Below, one piece after another: positions 1,716-18,108 of a DNA stretch of 18,108 nucleotides. The notes beneath the pieces were generated by a model. That model did no database searches and was not told where the DNA came from. It saw only the letters and a program-made list of their open reading frames with translations. The stretch lies in the NCBI GenBank assembly GCA_013416795.1, contig RQSC01000034.1:1-18108 (forward strand), given 5' to 3'. How positions within the stretch are numbered: position 1 is the first letter of the stretch; every line of letters starts with the position of its first letter. Both the position numbers and the translations under genes were made by a program. The DNA is from Prasinococcaceae sp. CCMP 1430. Lineage: Eukaryota; Plantae; Prasinodermophyta.

Positions 1716-2312
1716 TTACAGCGAGATCGAGGTCCAGTACTCGGTGGCGTACTTCATCGAGTTGACGTGGACGGGGTCGGCGACGTGCGCGGACCAGTTG
1801 GCGATGGGGCCCTCCTTGGTCCACACGGCCTGCGAGATGCAGCCGAGCCACGCGAACATGGCGAGGCGGCAGTGCTTGAGCTCCTTGAGCTTCAGCTCGT
1901 CGAGGTCGCCCGACTCGGCGAGGTTGAGGGGGTCGAAGCGGCCGCCCGGGTTGGCGTCGCCCACGGTGAGCTCGTCGAACGCCGGGTCGGTGAGGCCGGT
2001 GCGGTACGCCTCGGCCAGGCCCATGGTGACGATCTCAATGCCGATCACCGCCCAGAACGAGGGGTAGCCGGAGCCCTCCGGCGCGAGCGGGGCGATGGCG
2101 CCCGGGAACTTGTCCGCGATGGCGGTGCAGTCGTCGGGGGTGCACAGGGCGCCCGCCTCGAACCAGGGGATGCCGGTGCCGTTCTCCGAGGCCCACGCGC
2201 CGGTCACGCCGAGCATGGCGAAGCGGCCGTGGATGATCTCGCGCTCGGCGTTCTTCTCGTTGCCGAAGGGGATCAGGGGCGACTCGCCCGCGCCGGGGTA
2301 GGTGCCGAACTC
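1716..2312 (-). CDS. LHCP: Prasinophyte light-harvesting chlorophyll a/b protein, copy 1 (main exon; exon 1 not visible, probably in gap 2679-3294)
   Basis: EREIIHGRFAMLG (helix B), CTPDDC, AEAYR (helix C) and ELKHCRLAM (helix A), typical of Mantoniella/Ostreococcus Lhcp. TTGCAG acceptor ends at 2313, GCTGAC branch at 2353-2348, TAA at 1718-1716. Confidence 0.95.
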   Translation of the reverse strand, partial: EFGTYPGAGESPLIPFGNEKNAEREIIHGRFAMLGVTGAWASENGTGIPWFEAGALCTPDDCTAIADKFPGAIAPLAPEGSGYPSFWAVIGIEIVTMGLAEAYRTGLTDPAFDELTVGDANPGGRFDPLNLAESGDLDELKLKELKHCRLAMFAWLGCISQAVWTKEGPIANWSAHVADPVHVNSMKYATEYWTSISL

Positions 2313-2678
2313 CTGCAATTGCGGCGGTCGCGCGGGCGGCGAAGCGTGTCAGCCAACGCGCTCGAGCTCGGGAGGGCGCGGCGGGCGCGACACCGCGCTG
2401 GCGCCGCGAATCGAGCGGTCCAGGGCGCGCGCGGGCGCTGCGATCGCATGGCTCCCATCCCCGATCCCCGATGCGCAGCCCGCGCCGGAAATTCGCGCCC
2501 CTCCCACCAGGCTCCCCGCCGGCGCTTGGGAGCCGCGCGGACAAGCAGCAGGGCAGCCGTGCCCGGCGCGCGCTCGCGCGCGCGCGCCCAATTTCTCGCC
2601 GAGGCCTTTGGTCGCCGCCGAGGCGCACGCGTCGAGCGCGGTCCCTCGGGCTCGCTGCCCTCGGCGCGCGCGCGCCGT

Positions 2679-3294
2679 NNNNNNNNNNNNNNNNNNNNNN
2701 NNNNNNNNNNNNNNNNNNNNNNNNNNNNNNNNNNNNNNNNNNNNNNNNNNNNNNNNNNNNNNNNNNNNNNNNNNNNNNNNNNNNNNNNNNNNNNNNNNNN
2801 NNNNNNNNNNNNNNNNNNNNNNNNNNNNNNNNNNNNNNNNNNNNNNNNNNNNNNNNNNNNNNNNNNNNNNNNNNNNNNNNNNNNNNNNNNNNNNNNNNNN
2901 NNNNNNNNNNNNNNNNNNNNNNNNNNNNNNNNNNNNNNNNNNNNNNNNNNNNNNNNNNNNNNNNNNNNNNNNNNNNNNNNNNNNNNNNNNNNNNNNNNNN
3001 NNNNNNNNNNNNNNNNNNNNNNNNNNNNNNNNNNNNNNNNNNNNNNNNNNNNNNNNNNNNNNNNNNNNNNNNNNNNNNNNNNNNNNNNNNNNNNNNNNNN
3101 NNNNNNNNNNNNNNNNNNNNNNNNNNNNNNNNNNNNNNNNNNNNNNNNNNNNNNNNNNNNNNNNNNNNNNNNNNNNNNNNNNNNNNNNNNNNNNNNNNNN
3201 NNNNNNNNNNNNNNNNNNNNNNNNNNNNNNNNNNNNNNNNNNNNNNNNNNNNNNNNNNNNNNNNNNNNNNNNNNNNNNNNNNNNNNNNNNNNNN
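2679..3294. other. Assembly gap (616 N)
   Basis: Run of N. Confidence 1.
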
Positions 3295-3925
3295 GGCCGC
3301 GCGCCGGGCGAAGGGGCGCGGCGCAGGCGAGGAGGACCCGCGCGTCGTTGCCCGTTGGCCGTCACTGCCCCCCGCCGCGGGGGTCACGGGCGCCTCACCG
3401 CCGGGCGACGGGGACTGCGAAAACTGGGAGAGGGCCACGAGGCGATGGCAGAATGTCCACAGCTTGTGTGGAGTTGGGATGGTCACGTGGTCGGTGCAGG
3501 GTCCTACGGAGCGCGTGCAGCTGAGCGTGCTCTGCCTTGGCCGCCTCGGCGCGCCGCCCTGGCCGCCTGCGTCGCCGTGCGACGCGACAGTCGTGCTCCG
3601 TGGCGCGGCTGGCTGCTCCCACGGCTCGCTCCCGCGGCTCGGCGCGCTGCGAGCGATGCTGGGTCGCGCCTCGACGCGCCCGGCTGCAAGGCCCGCGTCA
3701 CGGCCTGTGCACACCCACACCTTGCTGTCGCAACGGATCGAGACACTGGCATCGCTTGGCCCACGCCCGCGCGCCCGCACACGCGCGGCGTGGACGCGGG
3801 TCTCCGAGGCGATACACAAGTTGTTATGCGTTCAGACCTATCGCGCGGTCGCTATCGGGCGGCAGCATGTAAAATCGGTCCTCGGCACAAACACCGAACG
3901 CCCCGGGCGCCGGAGTGCGAGCCGC

Positions 3926-4522
3926 TTAGAGCGAGATCGAGGTCCAGTACTCGGTGGCGTACTTCATCGAGTTGACGTGGACGGGGTCGGCGACGTGCGC
4001 GGACCAGTTGGCGATGGGGCCCTCCTTGGTCCACACGGCCTGCGAGATGCAGCCGAGCCACGCGAACATGGCGAGGCGGCAGTGCTTGAGCTCCTTGAGC
4101 TTCAGCTCGTCGAGGTCGCCCGACTCGGCGAGGTTGAGGGGGTCGAAGCGGCCGCCCGGGTTGGCGTCGCCCACGGTGAGCTCGTCGAACGCCGGGTCGG
4201 TGAGGCCGGTGCGGTACGCCTCGGCCAGGCCCATGGTGACGATCTCAATGCCGATCACCGCCCAGAACGAGGGGTAGCCGGAGCCCTCCGGCGCGAGCGG
4301 GGCGATGGCGCCCGGGAACTTGTCCGCGATGGCAGTGCAGTCGTCGGGCGAGCAGAGCGCGCCGGCCTCGAACCAGGGGATGCCGGTGCCGTTCTCCGAG
4401 GCCCACGCGCCGGTCACGCCGAGCATGGCGAAGCGGCCGTGGATGATCTCGCGCTCGGCGTTCTTCTCGTTGCCGAAGGGGATCAGGGGCGACTCGCCCG
4501 CGCCGGGGTAGGTGCCGAACTC
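3926..4522 (-). CDS. LHCP: Lhcp copy 2 (main exon; 5' part in gap)
   Basis: Tandem duplicate of copy 1 at offset 2210 bp, with 7 nucleotide differences and one amino-acid change (CTPDDC to CSPDDC). GCAG acceptor abuts the gap; TAA at 3928-3926. Confidence 0.95.
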   Translation of the reverse strand, partial: EFGTYPGAGESPLIPFGNEKNAEREIIHGRFAMLGVTGAWASENGTGIPWFEAGALCSPDDCTAIADKFPGAIAPLAPEGSGYPSFWAVIGIEIVTMGLAEAYRTGLTDPAFDELTVGDANPGGRFDPLNLAESGDLDELKLKELKHCRLAMFAWLGCISQAVWTKEGPIANWSAHVADPVHVNSMKYATEYWTSISL

Positions 4523-4526
4523 CTGC

Positions 4527-5349
4527 NNNNNNNNNNNNNNNNNNNNNNNNNNNNNNNNNNNNNNNNNNNNNNNNNNNNNNNNNNNNNNNNNNNNNNNNNN
4601 NNNNNNNNNNNNNNNNNNNNNNNNNNNNNNNNNNNNNNNNNNNNNNNNNNNNNNNNNNNNNNNNNNNNNNNNNNNNNNNNNNNNNNNNNNNNNNNNNNNN
4701 NNNNNNNNNNNNNNNNNNNNNNNNNNNNNNNNNNNNNNNNNNNNNNNNNNNNNNNNNNNNNNNNNNNNNNNNNNNNNNNNNNNNNNNNNNNNNNNNNNNN
4801 NNNNNNNNNNNNNNNNNNNNNNNNNNNNNNNNNNNNNNNNNNNNNNNNNNNNNNNNNNNNNNNNNNNNNNNNNNNNNNNNNNNNNNNNNNNNNNNNNNNN
4901 NNNNNNNNNNNNNNNNNNNNNNNNNNNNNNNNNNNNNNNNNNNNNNNNNNNNNNNNNNNNNNNNNNNNNNNNNNNNNNNNNNNNNNNNNNNNNNNNNNNN
5001 NNNNNNNNNNNNNNNNNNNNNNNNNNNNNNNNNNNNNNNNNNNNNNNNNNNNNNNNNNNNNNNNNNNNNNNNNNNNNNNNNNNNNNNNNNNNNNNNNNNN
5101 NNNNNNNNNNNNNNNNNNNNNNNNNNNNNNNNNNNNNNNNNNNNNNNNNNNNNNNNNNNNNNNNNNNNNNNNNNNNNNNNNNNNNNNNNNNNNNNNNNNN
5201 NNNNNNNNNNNNNNNNNNNNNNNNNNNNNNNNNNNNNNNNNNNNNNNNNNNNNNNNNNNNNNNNNNNNNNNNNNNNNNNNNNNNNNNNNNNNNNNNNNNN
5301 NNNNNNNNNNNNNNNNNNNNNNNNNNNNNNNNNNNNNNNNNNNNNNNNN
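4527..5349. other. Assembly gap (823 N)
   Basis: Run of N between the divergent Lhcp copies 2 and 3. Confidence 1.
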
Positions 5350-5395
5350 CGAGCGGCGGGGCCGCACGCGCGCGCCGGCGCGAAATCGCGTGCGC

Positions 5396-5560
5396 GCGTG
5401 CGTGTGCGTGCGCGTGTGCGTGTGCGAGTGCGTGTGTGTACGCCTGTGCGTGTGTGTGTGTGCGTGTGTGTGTACGCCGGTGTGTGAAGCAGTGTGTGTG
5501 TGTGTGACTGCGTGTGTGACTGTGTGTGTGTGCATGTGCGTGTGCGCGTGTGCGTGCGCG
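5396..5560. repeat. Degenerate (GT)n/(GTGC)n microsatellite, probably inside the Lhcp copy 3 first intron
   Basis: Long interrupted gtgtgt/gcgtgt tract. Confidence 0.85.
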
Positions 5561-5986
5561 CGCGCGCCCCGCCGCGCAGCCCACGCATGCGCATGGGGAT
5601 CCTGCACGGATCCCTCTGACGTGCATTAGGGTATACACATTTGAGGGTCTGTATACACGCGCGAGGGGAGGTCTTTTCGCAAGCGGCGGCGGCGGCGGCG
5701 GGTTGGGGTTGGCGCGCGCCGCGGCGCCCCCCCCCCCCCCGGCCGCGCGCGCCTCATCCTCATCGCCTTATCGCCAACACGCGCGGAACCGCGGTTCGCG
5801 CGCGCTTTCGCCGTCCGCGAAGTCGACGCGTTCGCAGGCGATCCCGGGCGCGAGGCGGGCGGGCGGCGCGAGGCTGGGGCGCGGCGGTGGGCGCCTCGCG
5901 ATCGCTGGGGTGCGCGCGGCGCTGACACGACGCGCGCCCCTTCCCACATCTCCCTCTCCCCCGACCGACCTCCCGTGCCACCGCAG

Positions 5987-6571
5987 GAGCCGGGCACCTA
6001 CCCGGGCGGCGATGGCGAGACCATCATCCCCTTCACCGACGAGAAGAACGCCGAGCGCGAGATCATCCACGGCCGCTTCGCCATGCTCGGCGTGACCGGC
6101 GCGTGGGCCTCGGAGAACGGCACCGGCATCCCCTGGTTCGAGGCGGGCGCCCTGTCGTGGGGGCTGCTGACGTGGCGGATCGCGGACAAGTTCCCGGGCG
6201 CCATCGCCCCGCTCGCGCCGGAGGGCTCGGGCTACCCCTCGTACTGGCTGGTGATCGCCGTTGAGATCGCGGCCATGGGCGGCGCCGAGGCCTACCGCAC
6301 CGGCCTCGTCGACCCCGCGTTCGACGAGCTCACCGTGGGCGACGCCAACCCGGGCGGCCGCTTCGACCCCCTCAGCCTGGCCGAGTCGGGCGACCTCGAC
6401 GAGCTCAAGCTCAAGGAGCTCAAGCACTGCCGCCTCGCCATGGGCGCGTGGTTCGGCTGCATCTGGCAGGCGATCGCCACCGGCGAGGGCCCCATCGCCA
6501 ACTGGCGCGCGCACGTTGCGGACCCCGTCCACAACAACCTGATCTCCGCCCAGTACGCCCCGTGGCTGTAA
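5987..6571 (+). CDS. LHCP: Lhcp copy 3, divergent paralogue (main exon; exon 1 not visible)
   Basis: Same LHC helix motifs with different N- and C-termini (EPGTYPGGDGETIIPFTD...YAPWL). GCTGAC branch at 5921-5926, pyrimidine tract ~5937-5975, CGCAG acceptor ends at 5986, TAA at 6569-6571. Carries the anomalous block at 6156-6178. Confidence 0.95.
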   Translation, partial: EPGTYPGGDGETIIPFTDEKNAEREIIHGRFAMLGVTGAWASENGTGIPWFEAGALSWGLLTWRIADKFPGAIAPLAPEGSGYPSYWLVIAVEIAAMGGAEAYRTGLVDPAFDELTVGDANPGGRFDPLSLAESGDLDELKLKELKHCRLAMGAWFGCIWQAIATGEGPIANWRAHVADPVHNNLISAQYAPWL

Positions 6572-8968: not shown

Positions 8969-9894
8969 NNNNNNNNNNNNNNNNNNNNNNNNNNNNNNNN
9001 NNNNNNNNNNNNNNNNNNNNNNNNNNNNNNNNNNNNNNNNNNNNNNNNNNNNNNNNNNNNNNNNNNNNNNNNNNNNNNNNNNNNNNNNNNNNNNNNNNNN
9101 NNNNNNNNNNNNNNNNNNNNNNNNNNNNNNNNNNNNNNNNNNNNNNNNNNNNNNNNNNNNNNNNNNNNNNNNNNNNNNNNNNNNNNNNNNNNNNNNNNNN
9201 NNNNNNNNNNNNNNNNNNNNNNNNNNNNNNNNNNNNNNNNNNNNNNNNNNNNNNNNNNNNNNNNNNNNNNNNNNNNNNNNNNNNNNNNNNNNNNNNNNNN
9301 NNNNNNNNNNNNNNNNNNNNNNNNNNNNNNNNNNNNNNNNNNNNNNNNNNNNNNNNNNNNNNNNNNNNNNNNNNNNNNNNNNNNNNNNNNNNNNNNNNNN
9401 NNNNNNNNNNNNNNNNNNNNNNNNNNNNNNNNNNNNNNNNNNNNNNNNNNNNNNNNNNNNNNNNNNNNNNNNNNNNNNNNNNNNNNNNNNNNNNNNNNNN
9501 NNNNNNNNNNNNNNNNNNNNNNNNNNNNNNNNNNNNNNNNNNNNNNNNNNNNNNNNNNNNNNNNNNNNNNNNNNNNNNNNNNNNNNNNNNNNNNNNNNNN
9601 NNNNNNNNNNNNNNNNNNNNNNNNNNNNNNNNNNNNNNNNNNNNNNNNNNNNNNNNNNNNNNNNNNNNNNNNNNNNNNNNNNNNNNNNNNNNNNNNNNNN
9701 NNNNNNNNNNNNNNNNNNNNNNNNNNNNNNNNNNNNNNNNNNNNNNNNNNNNNNNNNNNNNNNNNNNNNNNNNNNNNNNNNNNNNNNNNNNNNNNNNNNN
9801 NNNNNNNNNNNNNNNNNNNNNNNNNNNNNNNNNNNNNNNNNNNNNNNNNNNNNNNNNNNNNNNNNNNNNNNNNNNNNNNNNNNNNNNNNNNNNN
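8969..9894. other. Assembly gap (926 N)
   Basis: Run of N; probably contains the RAD5 start. Confidence 1.
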
Positions 9895-12800
9895 CGTCGC
9901 CCTGGCCGCCGCACGGCCGCGGCGGCGTGCGCCTCGGGCGGTGGGTCGTGCGCGCGACCTCCACCACGAAGGGCCGCGGGTACCTGCGCGCGGGAGACCC
10001 CGTGACGCTGCGCTTCCCCGACCCGCCGCCGCAAGCCGGCGCGGGCGCCAAGGCTTCCAAAGGGGCGGGCAAGGGCAAGGGCAAGGGCAAGGGCAAGGGC
10101 GGCGCCCTGCCGAGGAAACGCATGGAGATCATCCGCTTCGCGAACAGGGGCGGGTACGAGGTGGGCCGCCTCCCGGGCGACGCGCGGCCGCTCATCGCGC
10201 TGCACGACGCGGGGCACGTGGCGGTGCGGGCGACGGCGCTCGAATGCACCGAGCCCCTCGAGATCATGGCGACCATCACGCTCGTGATCGAGGTCTCGGG
10301 CACGCCCAAGCTCTTCCGCGAGGCGGCCGCGTGCTCGGCGGCCACGGCGGGGCCGTCGGGCGGGGTGTTTGGCGGCGGCGGCGCGGGCGCGGGCGCCATG
10401 CCCAGCGCCAGCTCCTCCATCAACGTGCAGAAGGCGCCCATCACGAGGGTGCTCGAGCTGTGCGGCCTGCGCCCCTCCGCGAAGGCCGACTTCACGCCGG
10501 AGGCCTTCGAGGCACAGCGCAAGCGCGCGCTCGACGCGGCCGCCGCCGCGTCGCCGCTGCCGCCGCCGAAGCGCGCGTCGCCGCAGCACCCGGCGCTGCC
10601 AGCCCCTGCCGACGTCGCAGGGGGCGACGCCCTCGAGGAGGCGCACGCCCGCGAGGCGCGCGCCGACGCAGAGATCCAGCACGCGGCCATGGCGTCGCTC
10701 AGCCGGAGCAAGGAGCTCGAGGGGCGCGCGCTGCCTCGCGCGGAGCAGCCCGCCGACATGTGCTCCCCGCTGCGCGGCTACCAGCTGCAGGCGCTGCACT
10801 TCATGCTGGGGCGCGAGCAGGGAGAGGAGTGCGCCGACAAGCTGCACCCCTCCTGGGAGGAGTACACGGTGGGAGACGACGTGGGGACGGGCGGCGGCGG
10901 CCCCACGCGCTTCTATCACAACGTCTTCACGGGGGAGTGCTCGCTCGAGTTTCAGTCGGCCACGCGCGCCACGCGCGGGGGCATCCTCGCGGACTCGATG
11001 GGCCTGGGCAAGACCGTGGAGACCATCGCGCTGCTGGTGGCGGCGAGGCCCCCGCCGGCCAAGGAGCGGAGGGAGGCGCTGGCGGCCGAGCTCGCCAGGC
11101 CCCAGGCCGCCGCGGCGCCCGCGGCAATCAAGAGCCCGCTCAACTCGATGTTCGCGAAGGCCGCCGACGCGAGCGGCGCCGCCAGGCCCAAGCCCGCGCA
11201 GGTGCGCTTCGGCGGCACGCTGGTGGTGTGCCCCATGTCGCTGCTCGGGCAGTGGCGCGACGAGATCGAGCGGCACGTCCGCGGCGGCGCGCTGCGCGTC
11301 GTGGTGTACTACGGGAGCGATCGCAACACCAAGGGCGCGGGCGTTCGCGCGCTCATCGATGCCGACGTGGTCCTCACCACGTTCGGCGTGCTCGGCTCGG
11401 AGCTGAAGGGGGGCGTCGGCGGCGGAAGCGATGGGGGCGCGCAGCCGGGCGAAGCGCCGGCGAGCGACGGCGCCGCTGCCTGGCCGCCGCCGCGCAGCGG
11501 GCCGCTCTTGCATGTGCGCTGGTGGCGGGTGGTCCTGGACGAGGCGCACTCGATCAAGGGGCGGGGCACCGTGTCGCAGCGCGCCGCCTGCGCGCTGGCC
11601 GCCGAGCGGCGGTGGTGTCTGACGGGCACGCCCATACAGAACTCGCTCGAGGACCTGTACTCGCTGCTCAAGTTCCTGCGAGTGGAGCCGTGGTGCCACT
11701 GGGGCTGGTGGAGCCGCCTCATCCAGGCGCCGAACGAGGCTGGGGACACGCGCGCCTTGCACCTGCTGCGCGGCCTGCTGGTGCCGCTCGCGCTGCGGCG
11801 CACGAAGGACACGCTGGGGGCGGACGGCGCACCCATCCTGTCGTTGCCGCCAGCCGACGTGCAACTGCTCGAGCTGGAACCCACGCCCGAGGAGCGCGAC
11901 TTCTACCAGGCGCTCTACAAGCGCTCCAAGACCGAGTTCGACACCTTCGTCGAGCAGGGGCGCGTGCTGCACGAGTACGCGCACGTGCTCGAGCTGCTGC
12001 TGCGCCTGCGACAGTGCTGCAACCACCCTTTCCTGGTCATGTCGCGCGCGGACACCGCCAATGCCCTCGGCAAGGTGGCCAAGGCGTTCATGGGCAACAA
12101 GTCCAAACACGTGCCCCCGCCCCCGCCCAACGTGCCGGCACAGGAGCGACGGGAAAGGCAGGCGGAGGAGCGGCCGCAGCGGCCGGAGCCGTCGAGGGGG
12201 CAGGGCCAGGACGACGCGTCGGCCAACGGGCGGCGGCGCAGCGGCGGAGGGGGTGCCGCGCGTGCGCCTACGCCCGGCACCCGCCGGTCGACTAGGCGCA
12301 CCAGCACTGGCCGCTACGCCACGCGCGCATCACTCGATGCCGACGGAGGCGACGCCGCCGCTTCTCAGGGCGACGAGCATCGCGACGTCTCGCAGGCCGA
12401 GCGCGGCGCCGGCGCTGGCAGCGACAGGGACAGCGACAAGGCCAACGACAGGGACAGCGACTTCGACGTGCGCGTGGAGGAGAGCGATGGCGCCTCCGAG
12501 GGGGACGGATCCGGTGGCTCGGACTCCGACTTCGTCCCGGGCGGTGGCGCCAAGGGTAAGGGGTCTAATAAGAACCGACGCGGCAGCAGCGGCGGGGGAA
12601 CGAGCCGTGGCGGGGCGGCCCGAGGAGCTAGCGCGCCCGGGTCTGCTGACGGCGAGGAGGGCGCCTGCGCCGGCCCGACGTCCGCCTACGCCGTCGAGGT
12701 GGTGAAGGAGATCCAGGCGGCGCTGGCAGAGGGCAAGCCGTACGATTGTCCGATCTGCATGGACACCGCCGACGACCCTGTGATCACGCCGTGCGCGCAC

Positions 12801-16772: not shown

Positions 16773-16998
16773 TCTCGGCTTCGACTGCCGCAATAGGCTC
16801 CTCACGCAGCGTGCGCCGTCAGCCCCCAGCCGCCTCTAGAGCTTGAAGCCGAGCGGCCGCGACGACGGAGGGGAGGCTGGGGCAGCGGCGGGAGGAGGGA
16901 GGGCGGGGCACCGGCGCCGGCGCCCACTAGAGCCCGCACAGCAGCGCCGGGCGGCGTCGGTGTGATGCGCGCCGGTACGGAAAATTGCGGGATGCATC

Positions 16999-17015
16999 TT
17001 TTTTTTTTTTTTTTT
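16999..17015. repeat. T17 homopolymer in the IPP-2 / plastid-protein intergenic region
   Basis: 17 consecutive T. Confidence 0.9.
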
Positions 17016-17221
17016 GGCGCACGCGCGTGTGTGTGTGTGCCTCTCCTCCCTGCCGCGCAGTGGGTCGAGCGGGATGAGGGGGGTGGGGGTGGGTGGGGGC
17101 GTTCGCGTCGCGAGCCGCTTCTACCCCGCGCTCGCGGCCCAACGGCTCGCGCGCCGCGCCCTCGCGCGCTCCAGGGAGGCTCTCTTACGCCACGCGCGAG
17201 GAAGCTCGCGCGCGCGCGCGC

Positions 17222-17919
17222 TCACGGCGCGCCCCCGCCCCCGCCGGGCCCCTCGTCGAGCTCGGCCATCTCCTTGGCGAGGAGCGCCCGCGCCTCGCGC
17301 ATGGCGGAGGCCTCGTCGCCGTAGTGCATGCGCCGCACGGCTCGGAAGCCCTCGGCGTGTTCGGCGGCCGCCGCGGCGGCCTCCTCGGCGCTCATCGCGC
17401 GTGGCCCGCCGCCGTCGCTGGCGCCGCCGCCGTCTGCGCCGCCGATGCCGCCGTCGTCGCCGCCGTCGTCCCCGACGGCGCTCCCCTGCTCCTTCCCGCC
17501 CGCCCGCGCGTCGGCGTCCGCCTTCCCCTTGCGTATGGCCTCGTCTTCGAGCTCCTTGAGCCTGCGCTGCAGCTCGTGGGCGGTGTGCTCGTGCGGCGTG
17601 GCGCCTCGCACGTACTCCCGCACGACTGCGCGGTCGCGGTCGCGGGCGGGGGGCGGGCGAGTCAGCCGTCGCCGAGCGCGCGCGCGCCTGCGCGCGCGGG
17701 CACGCGCGTGCGCGCTCGCGAGCGTGGGTGCATGCCCGGTGCGCGCACGAGCGGCGGCAACGCACCTGTCCTTGCTTCCGCCTCCTCGTCCGAGTCGTAG
17801 TACAGGAAGGGCGTGTCCGGGATGTCGATCTTCTGCGTCGCGTACTCGCCCGCCGCGCGCGCCCGCCTGTCGGCCTCTATGGCGGACTCGTCGAAGGACA
17901 CGCCGCGCCGCGGGGACAT
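17222..17919 (-). CDS. PPP1R2: Protein phosphatase 1 inhibitor-2 homologue; exons 17919-17766 and 17625-17222
   Basis: Plant-type N-terminal RGVSFDE (cf. GRVQWDE), KIDIPDTPF (IDEPxTPY motif) and FRAVRRMHY (FxxxRKxHY motif). 140-bp phase-1 intron with GTGCGT donor, GCTGAC at 17666-17661 and CGCAG acceptor. Confidence 0.85.
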
Positions 17920-17935
17920 GGCGCGCCCGCGGCGA

Positions 17936-18082
17936 CTACTCCTTCCCTCCCGAAAGCCCGCGGGCCTCCTCAGCCTTGGCGTTCGCGCAGCACGCGTCGA
18001 AGCGCGCGATCTCCGCGGCGCAGTCGCGCTGGAAGTCGTACCGGCCCGCCGCGGAGCCGCGCGCGCGCGTGGCGATGCACGT
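17936..18082 (-). CDS. CMC4: Last exon of a CMC4/MTCP1-like Cx9C mitochondrial intermembrane-space protein (not in the ORF track)
   Basis: After a CGCAG acceptor (ends at 18083): TCIATRARGSAAGRYDFQRDCAAEIARFDACCANAKAEEARGLSGGKE*, with the C-x9-CC signature of CMC4 and strong GC3. TAG at 17938-17936; upstream exon(s) lie outside the window. Confidence 0.7.
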   Translation of the reverse strand, partial: TCIATRARGSAAGRYDFQRDCAAEIARFDACCANAKAEEARGLSGGKE

Positions 18083-18108
18083 CTGCGCGCGGGCGCCGGC
18101 GCGCGCGC

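Follow-up and report, generated by a model that had tools for sequence, protein, structure and literature searches.

Sequence features of a candidate bicistronic locus pairing a CMC4-like gene with PP1 inhibitor-2 in Prasinodermophyta

Green-algal bicistrons and the CMC4/inhibitor-2 junction

Exclusively bicistronic nuclear loci were previously reported in Chlamydomonas, Chromochloris, and Auxenochlorella (Gallaher 2021, PMC7896298; Duenas 2025, PMC11892635), and the named examples include REX1S-REX1B, which has a 14-nt spacer, and TOM22-SDHAF3 (PMC7896298; PMC11892635). The median length of ORF 1 in these loci is 291-357 nt and the median inter-ORF distance is 40-183 nt, compared with intergenic medians of more than 2.5 kb for monocistronic genes. 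The 5′ UTRs are short, AUG is depleted before ORF 2, and a weak Kozak-like context at ORF 1 is combined with a consensus-like context at ORF 2. Moreover, mitochondrial proteins are over-represented among the products (PMC7896298; PMC11892635). Strengthening the context of ORF 1 led to a lower output of ORF 2 in A. protothecoides in vivo, which indicated leaky scanning, and the bicistron set of Auxenochlorella includes COX17, a COA4-like protein, and COA6 (PMC11892635).

The locus described here lies on the minus strand of a stretch of 18,108 nt, which was analysed as a whole and is called the window. Two conserved ORFs, both with homologues, follow each other on this strand with a TAG between them; the upstream ORF (ORF 1) is CMC4-like, and the downstream ORF (ORF 2) corresponds to PP1 inhibitor-2. 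The locus resembles the green-algal bicistrons in its small ORF 1 (240 nt), its very short spacer (16 nt), and the different frame of ORF 2. The likeness extends to the lack of an AUG before ORF 2 and, as judged by a general rule only, to an apparently weaker start of ORF 1 and an apparently better one of ORF 2. It also extends to the products, that of ORF 1 being a small Cys-motif protein of mitochondrial type with no obvious functional link to its partner. COX17, the COA4-like protein, and COA6 of Auxenochlorella are of the same class as CMC4, namely small Cys-motif proteins of the intermembrane space. Unlike the published loci, this one is from Prasinoderma coloniale (Prasinodermophyta), outside the Chlorophyta where those were described. 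Furthermore, the published bicistrons were defined by evidence from transcripts, TSSs, poly(A) sites, and peptides, whereas the candidate locus in Prasinoderma was recognised by its sequence. The initial annotation was not aware of a description of the pairing, and the CMC4 and inhibitor-2 pair was absent from the text supplements of the 2025 study (PMC11892635).

We consider it fairly probable that both ORFs lie on one mature mRNA, from which inhibitor-2 is made by leaky scanning, perhaps beside a monocistronic form. Such a shared message appears plausible and would agree with every sequence-level feature tested. If it is real, nuclear bicistronic expression would reach a third green-plant phylum with a new gene pair. 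Leaky scanning could then be tested on a clean example in which the spacer is very short and each cistron has its own intron.

On the minus strand, the upstream frame was read up to its stop as ...GGAAGGAG TAG, followed by the spacer and the ATG of inhibitor-2, and every coordinate initially annotated for this arrangement was correct (Table 1). Since 16 mod 3 is 1, ORF 2 lies in the +1 frame and read-through of the stop cannot fuse the two proteins, exactly as had been claimed. The spacer had also been described as free of TGTAA, and in fact no TGTAA was found anywhere on the minus strand from 18108 to 16600. The earlier view that separate UTRs would not fit this geometry was likewise borne out: a gap of 16 nt is too small for a promoter and the UTRs on either side of it, so that the mRNAs must be either heavily overlapping or one. 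The CMC4 mRNA must end further downstream, and it would carry both ORFs unless it is polyadenylated inside inhibitor-2. The neighbouring genes at the locus are 320-960 nt apart, compared with 16 nt here, which makes this gap exceptional for the locus.

Table 1. Features of the CMC4/inhibitor-2 locus in the window and their variable sites.
Feature	Position	Strand	Remarks	Variable sites
CMC4-like intron, 3′ end (acceptor cag 18088-18086)	18086..18108	-	Spliced product restores conserved motif	
CMC4-like exon 2 (PRCOL_00006294), 48 codons + TAG 17938-17936	17936..18085	-	100% identity to annotated protein	3/147 (window + 11 contigs)
Inter-ORF spacer TCGCCGCGGGCGCGCC, 16 nt	17920..17935	-	No ATG	4/16
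Inhibitor-2 exon 1, ATG at 17919 (17919-17917)	17766..17919	-	PF04979 E = 1.2e-3, profile 1-39	1/154
Inhibitor-2 intron, 140 nt, GTGCGT...CTGAC...GCGCAG	17626..17765	-	Sequence read	13/140
Inhibitor-2 exon 2, stop TGA 17224-17222	17222..17625	-	PF04979 E = 0.02, profile 79-125	18/401
GTAA, 34 nt past inhibitor-2 stop	17185..17188	-	Sole GTAA on strand, 18108-16600	

The main rival explanation is that two overlapping but independent mRNAs are made, with the TSS of inhibitor-2 in the intron or exon 2 of CMC4, and with the CMC4 message polyadenylated inside inhibitor-2. The public annotation, in which CMC4 is a gene of its own, is in line with this arrangement. The strand, however, contains neither TGTAA nor GTAA from the stop of CMC4 to that of inhibitor-2, where such a CMC4 message would have to end. 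In addition, hundreds of bases separate the other genes at the locus, and equally close gene pairs proved to be polycistronic in the algae where they were tested. Independent mRNAs are thus judged unlikely, although they keep some weight.

The sequence around the spacer also contains a 9-bp GC inverted repeat, CGCCGCGGG / CCCGCGGCG (17906-17934, minus strand), which places the AUG of inhibitor-2 in the loop of a hairpin. This hairpin was rejected as a feature of the locus, since substitutions at 17927 and 17929 break it in some haplotypes with no compensating change, and since the RNA fold around the spacer gained nothing in stability over shuffled sequence (z = 0.13); it is probably incidental. 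An Rfam scan of the window matched no RNA family. The G+C content of the window is 70-75%, and 2365 of its positions are N. Stretches of N, either masked sequence or gaps, were observed within 2001-6000 and about 8970-9900, and they are the reason why parts of the composition profile look low in GC.

The two genes of the locus

The window carries only exon 2 of the CMC4-like gene, as exon 1 lies beyond its end. The upstream frame in the window matches, with 100% identity, residues 31-79 of the 79-aa Prasinoderma coloniale protein PRCOL_00006294-RA (EukProt set), which confirmed the earlier assignment of the DNA to a prasinophyte-type lineage. Two environmental contigs with 98% identity to the window, L001 and L003, contain the complete gene. 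On L001, the gene consists of an ATG at L001:1331, a 93-nt exon 1, a GT..AG intron of 170 nt with a CTGAC branch-like site, and a 147-nt exon 2. The translation of exon 1 on L001 and L003 corresponds exactly to residues 1-31 of PRCOL_00006294-RA. The motif C-A-I-Q-x-C-I-A crosses the predicted splice junction and is contiguous in intronless homologues; its unbroken reading over the junction validates the predicted intron.

In the window, the upstream frame contains a C-x9-C with a second Cys directly after it. The full protein shows the twin Cx9C pattern (C-x4-C-x4-C ... C-x9-CC), with C23-x9-C33 enclosing C28, and C52-x9-C62 followed by C63. An exhaustive HMMER search yielded 26 relatives at E < 1e-3, with a local identity of 40-52% over the full length, and the 21 relatives that were aligned are 32-47% identical to PRCOL_00006294-RA over its full length. 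Among the 22 aligned homologues, C19, C23, C33, and C62 are invariant, while C28, C52, and C63 are nearly so; the N-terminal FVYQ motif is conserved together with the cysteines. PRCOL_00006294-RA alone scored 16.4 bits (E = 0.012) against the Pfam CMC4 profile (PF08991) and did not reach the gathering cut-off of 28.9, while 20 of the 22 aligned members, PRCOL_00006294-RA included, matched this profile (best E = 1.9e-11). The membership of ORF 1 in the family is therefore due to transitive homology and not to its own Pfam score, and on this basis we accept its predicted product as a twin-Cx9C protein of the CMC4 family. The nearest Atlas clusters, which are language-model look-alikes and serve as a lead only, all belonged to twin-Cx9C/CHCH families. 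A PDB sequence search with PRCOL_00006294-RA returned chance-level matches only, with no p8MTCP1 among them. The AlphaFold single-sequence model was a two-helix hairpin with a pLDDT of 61, too uncertain for a fold search.

The conservation of this protein bears on a second explanation, by which the CMC4-like frame is mainly a long regulatory uORF, translated to hold down inhibitor-2 and yielding a peptide without a function of its own. The frame is placed and spaced like a uORF, and the inter-ORF distances of published bicistrons are no different from uORF spacing. A functionless peptide, on the other hand, is at odds with a conserved family that gives full-length matches and has invariant cysteines, and with an intron positioned so as to preserve the conserved motif. 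We regard a purely regulatory frame as very improbable.

The downstream gene was identified by an exon-by-exon scan with the Pfam IPP-2 profile (PF04979). Exon 1 scored 20 bits and exon 2 scored 16 bits; the two matches are colinear, and each lies under the 25-bit cut-off. The donor GT of exon 1 is at 17765-17764, in phase 1. The three Atlas clusters nearest to exon 2 were all IPP-2 clusters from streptophytes (0.86-0.87). Furthermore, exon 1 contains RGVSF (RVxF-type) and KIDIPDTPF (PxTP), and exon 2 contains HYGDE (HYxxE). From what is known of mammalian and plant inhibitor-2, we take RGVSF, PDTP, and HYGDE to be the PP1-binding or regulatory motifs. PDB sequence searches with both exons gave chance-level matches only, and no inhibitor-2 chain was among them. 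By these sequence criteria, ORF 2 is a predicted two-exon PP1 inhibitor-2 gene of about 185 codons. The homologues on the CMC4 side, and the colinear IPP-2 matches and Atlas clusters on the inhibitor-2 side, bear out the initial assignment of both ORFs to conserved genes of these named families.

The protein collection, which includes the EukProt set of P. coloniale, was searched with inhibitor-2 exon 2 over lengths of 73-233 aa, and only genomic ORF calls of 133 aa from metagenomes were found, with no transcript-derived ORF among them. Within this length range, the public protein set of P. coloniale thus seems to be without a correct model of inhibitor-2, the gene being missing or mis-modelled. 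One partner of a bicistronic pair is often lost or mis-modelled in annotation, and a shared message, if real, would explain why gene catalogues miss one of the partners. In a further search for transcript-derived ORFs, a 159-aa stop-free reference across the spacer matched nothing among collection proteins of 87-278 aa. Moreover, an exact look-up of PRCOL_00006294-RA found no contig, and scans of JGI metagenome contigs with this protein and with inhibitor-2 exon 2 gave no match. None of the nine environmental alleles was equal to the strain's own sequence, and the sequencing runs of the strain are probably absent from the protein collection.

Start contexts and the proposed mode of translation

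Both start contexts were assessed with the general preference for a purine at -3, not with a consensus of P. coloniale. On the environmental contigs L001 and L003, at 98% identity to the window, ORF 1 starts with cctgtggATGG. This context, whose strength the initial annotation had listed as a check, is weak by the general rule, with T at -3. ORF 2 starts with gcgcgccATGt, with G at -3 and C at -1. In the spliced sequence (exon 1, exon 2, and spacer), the 253 nt that separate the two starts lack any ATG, and so does the 170-nt intron. Stretches of 253 nt without ATG made up 190 of 2949 (6.4%) in the window, so the AUG-free run is only modestly unusual.

These features differ in what they say about the independent mRNAs considered above. 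The CMC4 intron and exon 2 have no ATG, which fits a 5′ UTR too, and an AUG-free exon 2 is equally expected if a separate inhibitor-2 mRNA has this exon as its 5′ UTR. Leaky scanning from a shared cap is specifically favoured only by the lack of AUGs in exon 1 and by the apparently weak context of ORF 1, which separate messages do not predict.

Under the shared message, the locus would be one transcription unit, with its promoter in a region of ~320 nt shared with a divergent MAPEG gene. The pre-mRNA would contain two introns, one in each coding region, and the mature mRNA would consist of the 79-codon CMC4-like ORF, 16 nt, and the inhibitor-2 ORF of ~185 codons. Some 40S subunits would initiate at the poorly placed AUG of CMC4, while the remaining ones would scan the 253 AUG-free nucleotides and reach the better placed AUG of inhibitor-2. 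In this scheme, we infer that the two ORFs have a transcript and its 3′ end in common, and also how they are translated. A further inhibitor-2 mRNA, monocistronic and begun at an internal start site, which would make the locus partially polycistronic, would be compatible with the proposal.

A shared mRNA could also be translated differently, with inhibitor-2 being reached by reinitiation after termination on CMC4. The very short spacer and the lack of a competing AUG near the stop would suit this mode, and some reinitiation was not fully excluded by the authors of the 2025 study (PMC11892635). A 79-codon ORF 1 is nevertheless long for reinitiation, and its context is weak here. Furthermore, the Kozak strength of ORF 1 was inverse to the output of ORF 2 in A. 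protothecoides in vivo (PMC11892635). Translation of inhibitor-2 by reinitiation appears improbable, and leaky scanning remains the mode that we prefer.

Upstream of the CMC4-like gene, just past the end of the window, a divergent neighbour encodes a membrane protein of the MAPEG family (L001:136-1008, minus strand; PF01124, E = 2.3e-8). Its ATG is ~320 nt from that of CMC4, which suggests that the region between them is a shared bidirectional promoter region. The nearest ATGs upstream of ORF 1 are 88-92 nt before its start, where the promoter region has its single A/T-rich patch. At the other end of the locus, the GTAA downstream of inhibitor-2 (Table 1) is a candidate for a variant poly(A) signal, which could be common to both ORFs.

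CMC4 in other lineages and environmental haplotypes

The initial annotation had proposed synteny in other algae as a check. This gave no support, as no inhibitor-2 was found downstream of the CMC4 homologues of five other lineages. A 133-aa ORF downstream of a CMC4 homologue on contig L014 proved to be unrelated. The CMC4/inhibitor-2 pair is therefore lineage-specific, and since it is not conserved outside Prasinoderma-like populations, conservation lends no support to a shared message. The same result counts on the side of independent mRNAs.

A different partner was found on a marine metagenome contig (L015:4001-5004, plus strand), where only 5 nt separate the end of an 81-aa CMC4 homologue from the ATG of a 250-aa protein. 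This downstream protein belongs to DUF1824 (PF08854, E = 8.9e-25), and the contig, with a GC content of 0.64, represents a compact, intron-poor eukaryote. As at the Prasinoderma locus, ORF 1 has no internal ATG, and a weak start with C at -3 is followed by an ORF 2 with G at -3; unlike there, the partner is DUF1824 and the eukaryote is a different one. By its sequence features, this pair is a candidate for a second bicistron with CMC4 first. Human CMC4 at Xq28 shares a transcription unit and 5′ UTR with the unrelated MTCP1 (PMC8566464), and in this way CMC4 is again joined to an unrelated gene, as at the Prasinoderma locus. The human locus differs in that it produces two alternatively spliced transcripts with one ORF each, MTCP1 being in an intron of CMC4, whereas the Prasinoderma ORFs follow one another in tandem at a distance of 16 nt and are not known to be alternatively spliced.

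CMC4 may have repeatedly become the first cistron, with inhibitor-2, DUF1824, and human MTCP1 as partners, which is a lead and not a result. Its place ahead of more than one partner hints that some general rule may govern which genes become upstream cistrons. A recurrent CMC4 would suggest that small, AUG-poor proteins of the intermembrane space are favoured as ORF 1, where they set the translation level of the next gene. The joint proposition that leaky-scanning bicistrons are used in Prasinodermophyta and that CMC4 is a recurrent upstream cistron is tentative, and we rather doubt that both parts hold together. Prasinodermophyta are reported to branch before Chlorophyta and Streptophyta part from each other. 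If leaky-scanning bicistrons are indeed used there, this mode of expression would be either ancestral to green plants or repeatedly arisen.

The variation of the locus was followed on 13 metagenomic contigs from Tara, other ENA assemblies, and Logan, with an identity of 97.5-98.4%. The arrangement of stop, 16 nt, and ATG was identical in all 12 contigs that reach the junction. The 887 aligned bases of the locus contain no indel anywhere, and the constant length of the spacer is consequently uninformative by itself. Moreover, the contigs are only about 2% diverged, too close to show a long-term retention of the arrangement.

Substitutions were more telling (Table 1). The density of variable sites in CMC4 exon 2 was lower than in the intron and spacer taken together (3/147 vs 17/156, p = 0.002), and the spacer differed from the flanking coding sequence (Fisher p = 0.0003). 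These densities indicated that both ORFs act as constrained coding sequence, while the sequence of the spacer is free to vary. Two of the three changes in CMC4 exon 2 are synonymous third positions, and the third is an L>R change in the C-terminal tail. Both changes in the Cys-motif region are synonymous, which again speaks against a regulatory uORF with a functionless peptide. The amino-acid differences in inhibitor-2 exon 2 are mostly in a G/D-rich linker.

A run of 17 A was also observed at 16999-17015 (minus strand), ~207 nt past the stop of inhibitor-2, in a region of 75% G+C. Such a run may act as a poly(dA:dT) element of a promoter or terminator, or it may give rise to internal priming when libraries are selected for poly(A). 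The run was retained in all eight environmental contigs checked, with a length of 10-20 A, and an ATG follows directly after it at 16997.
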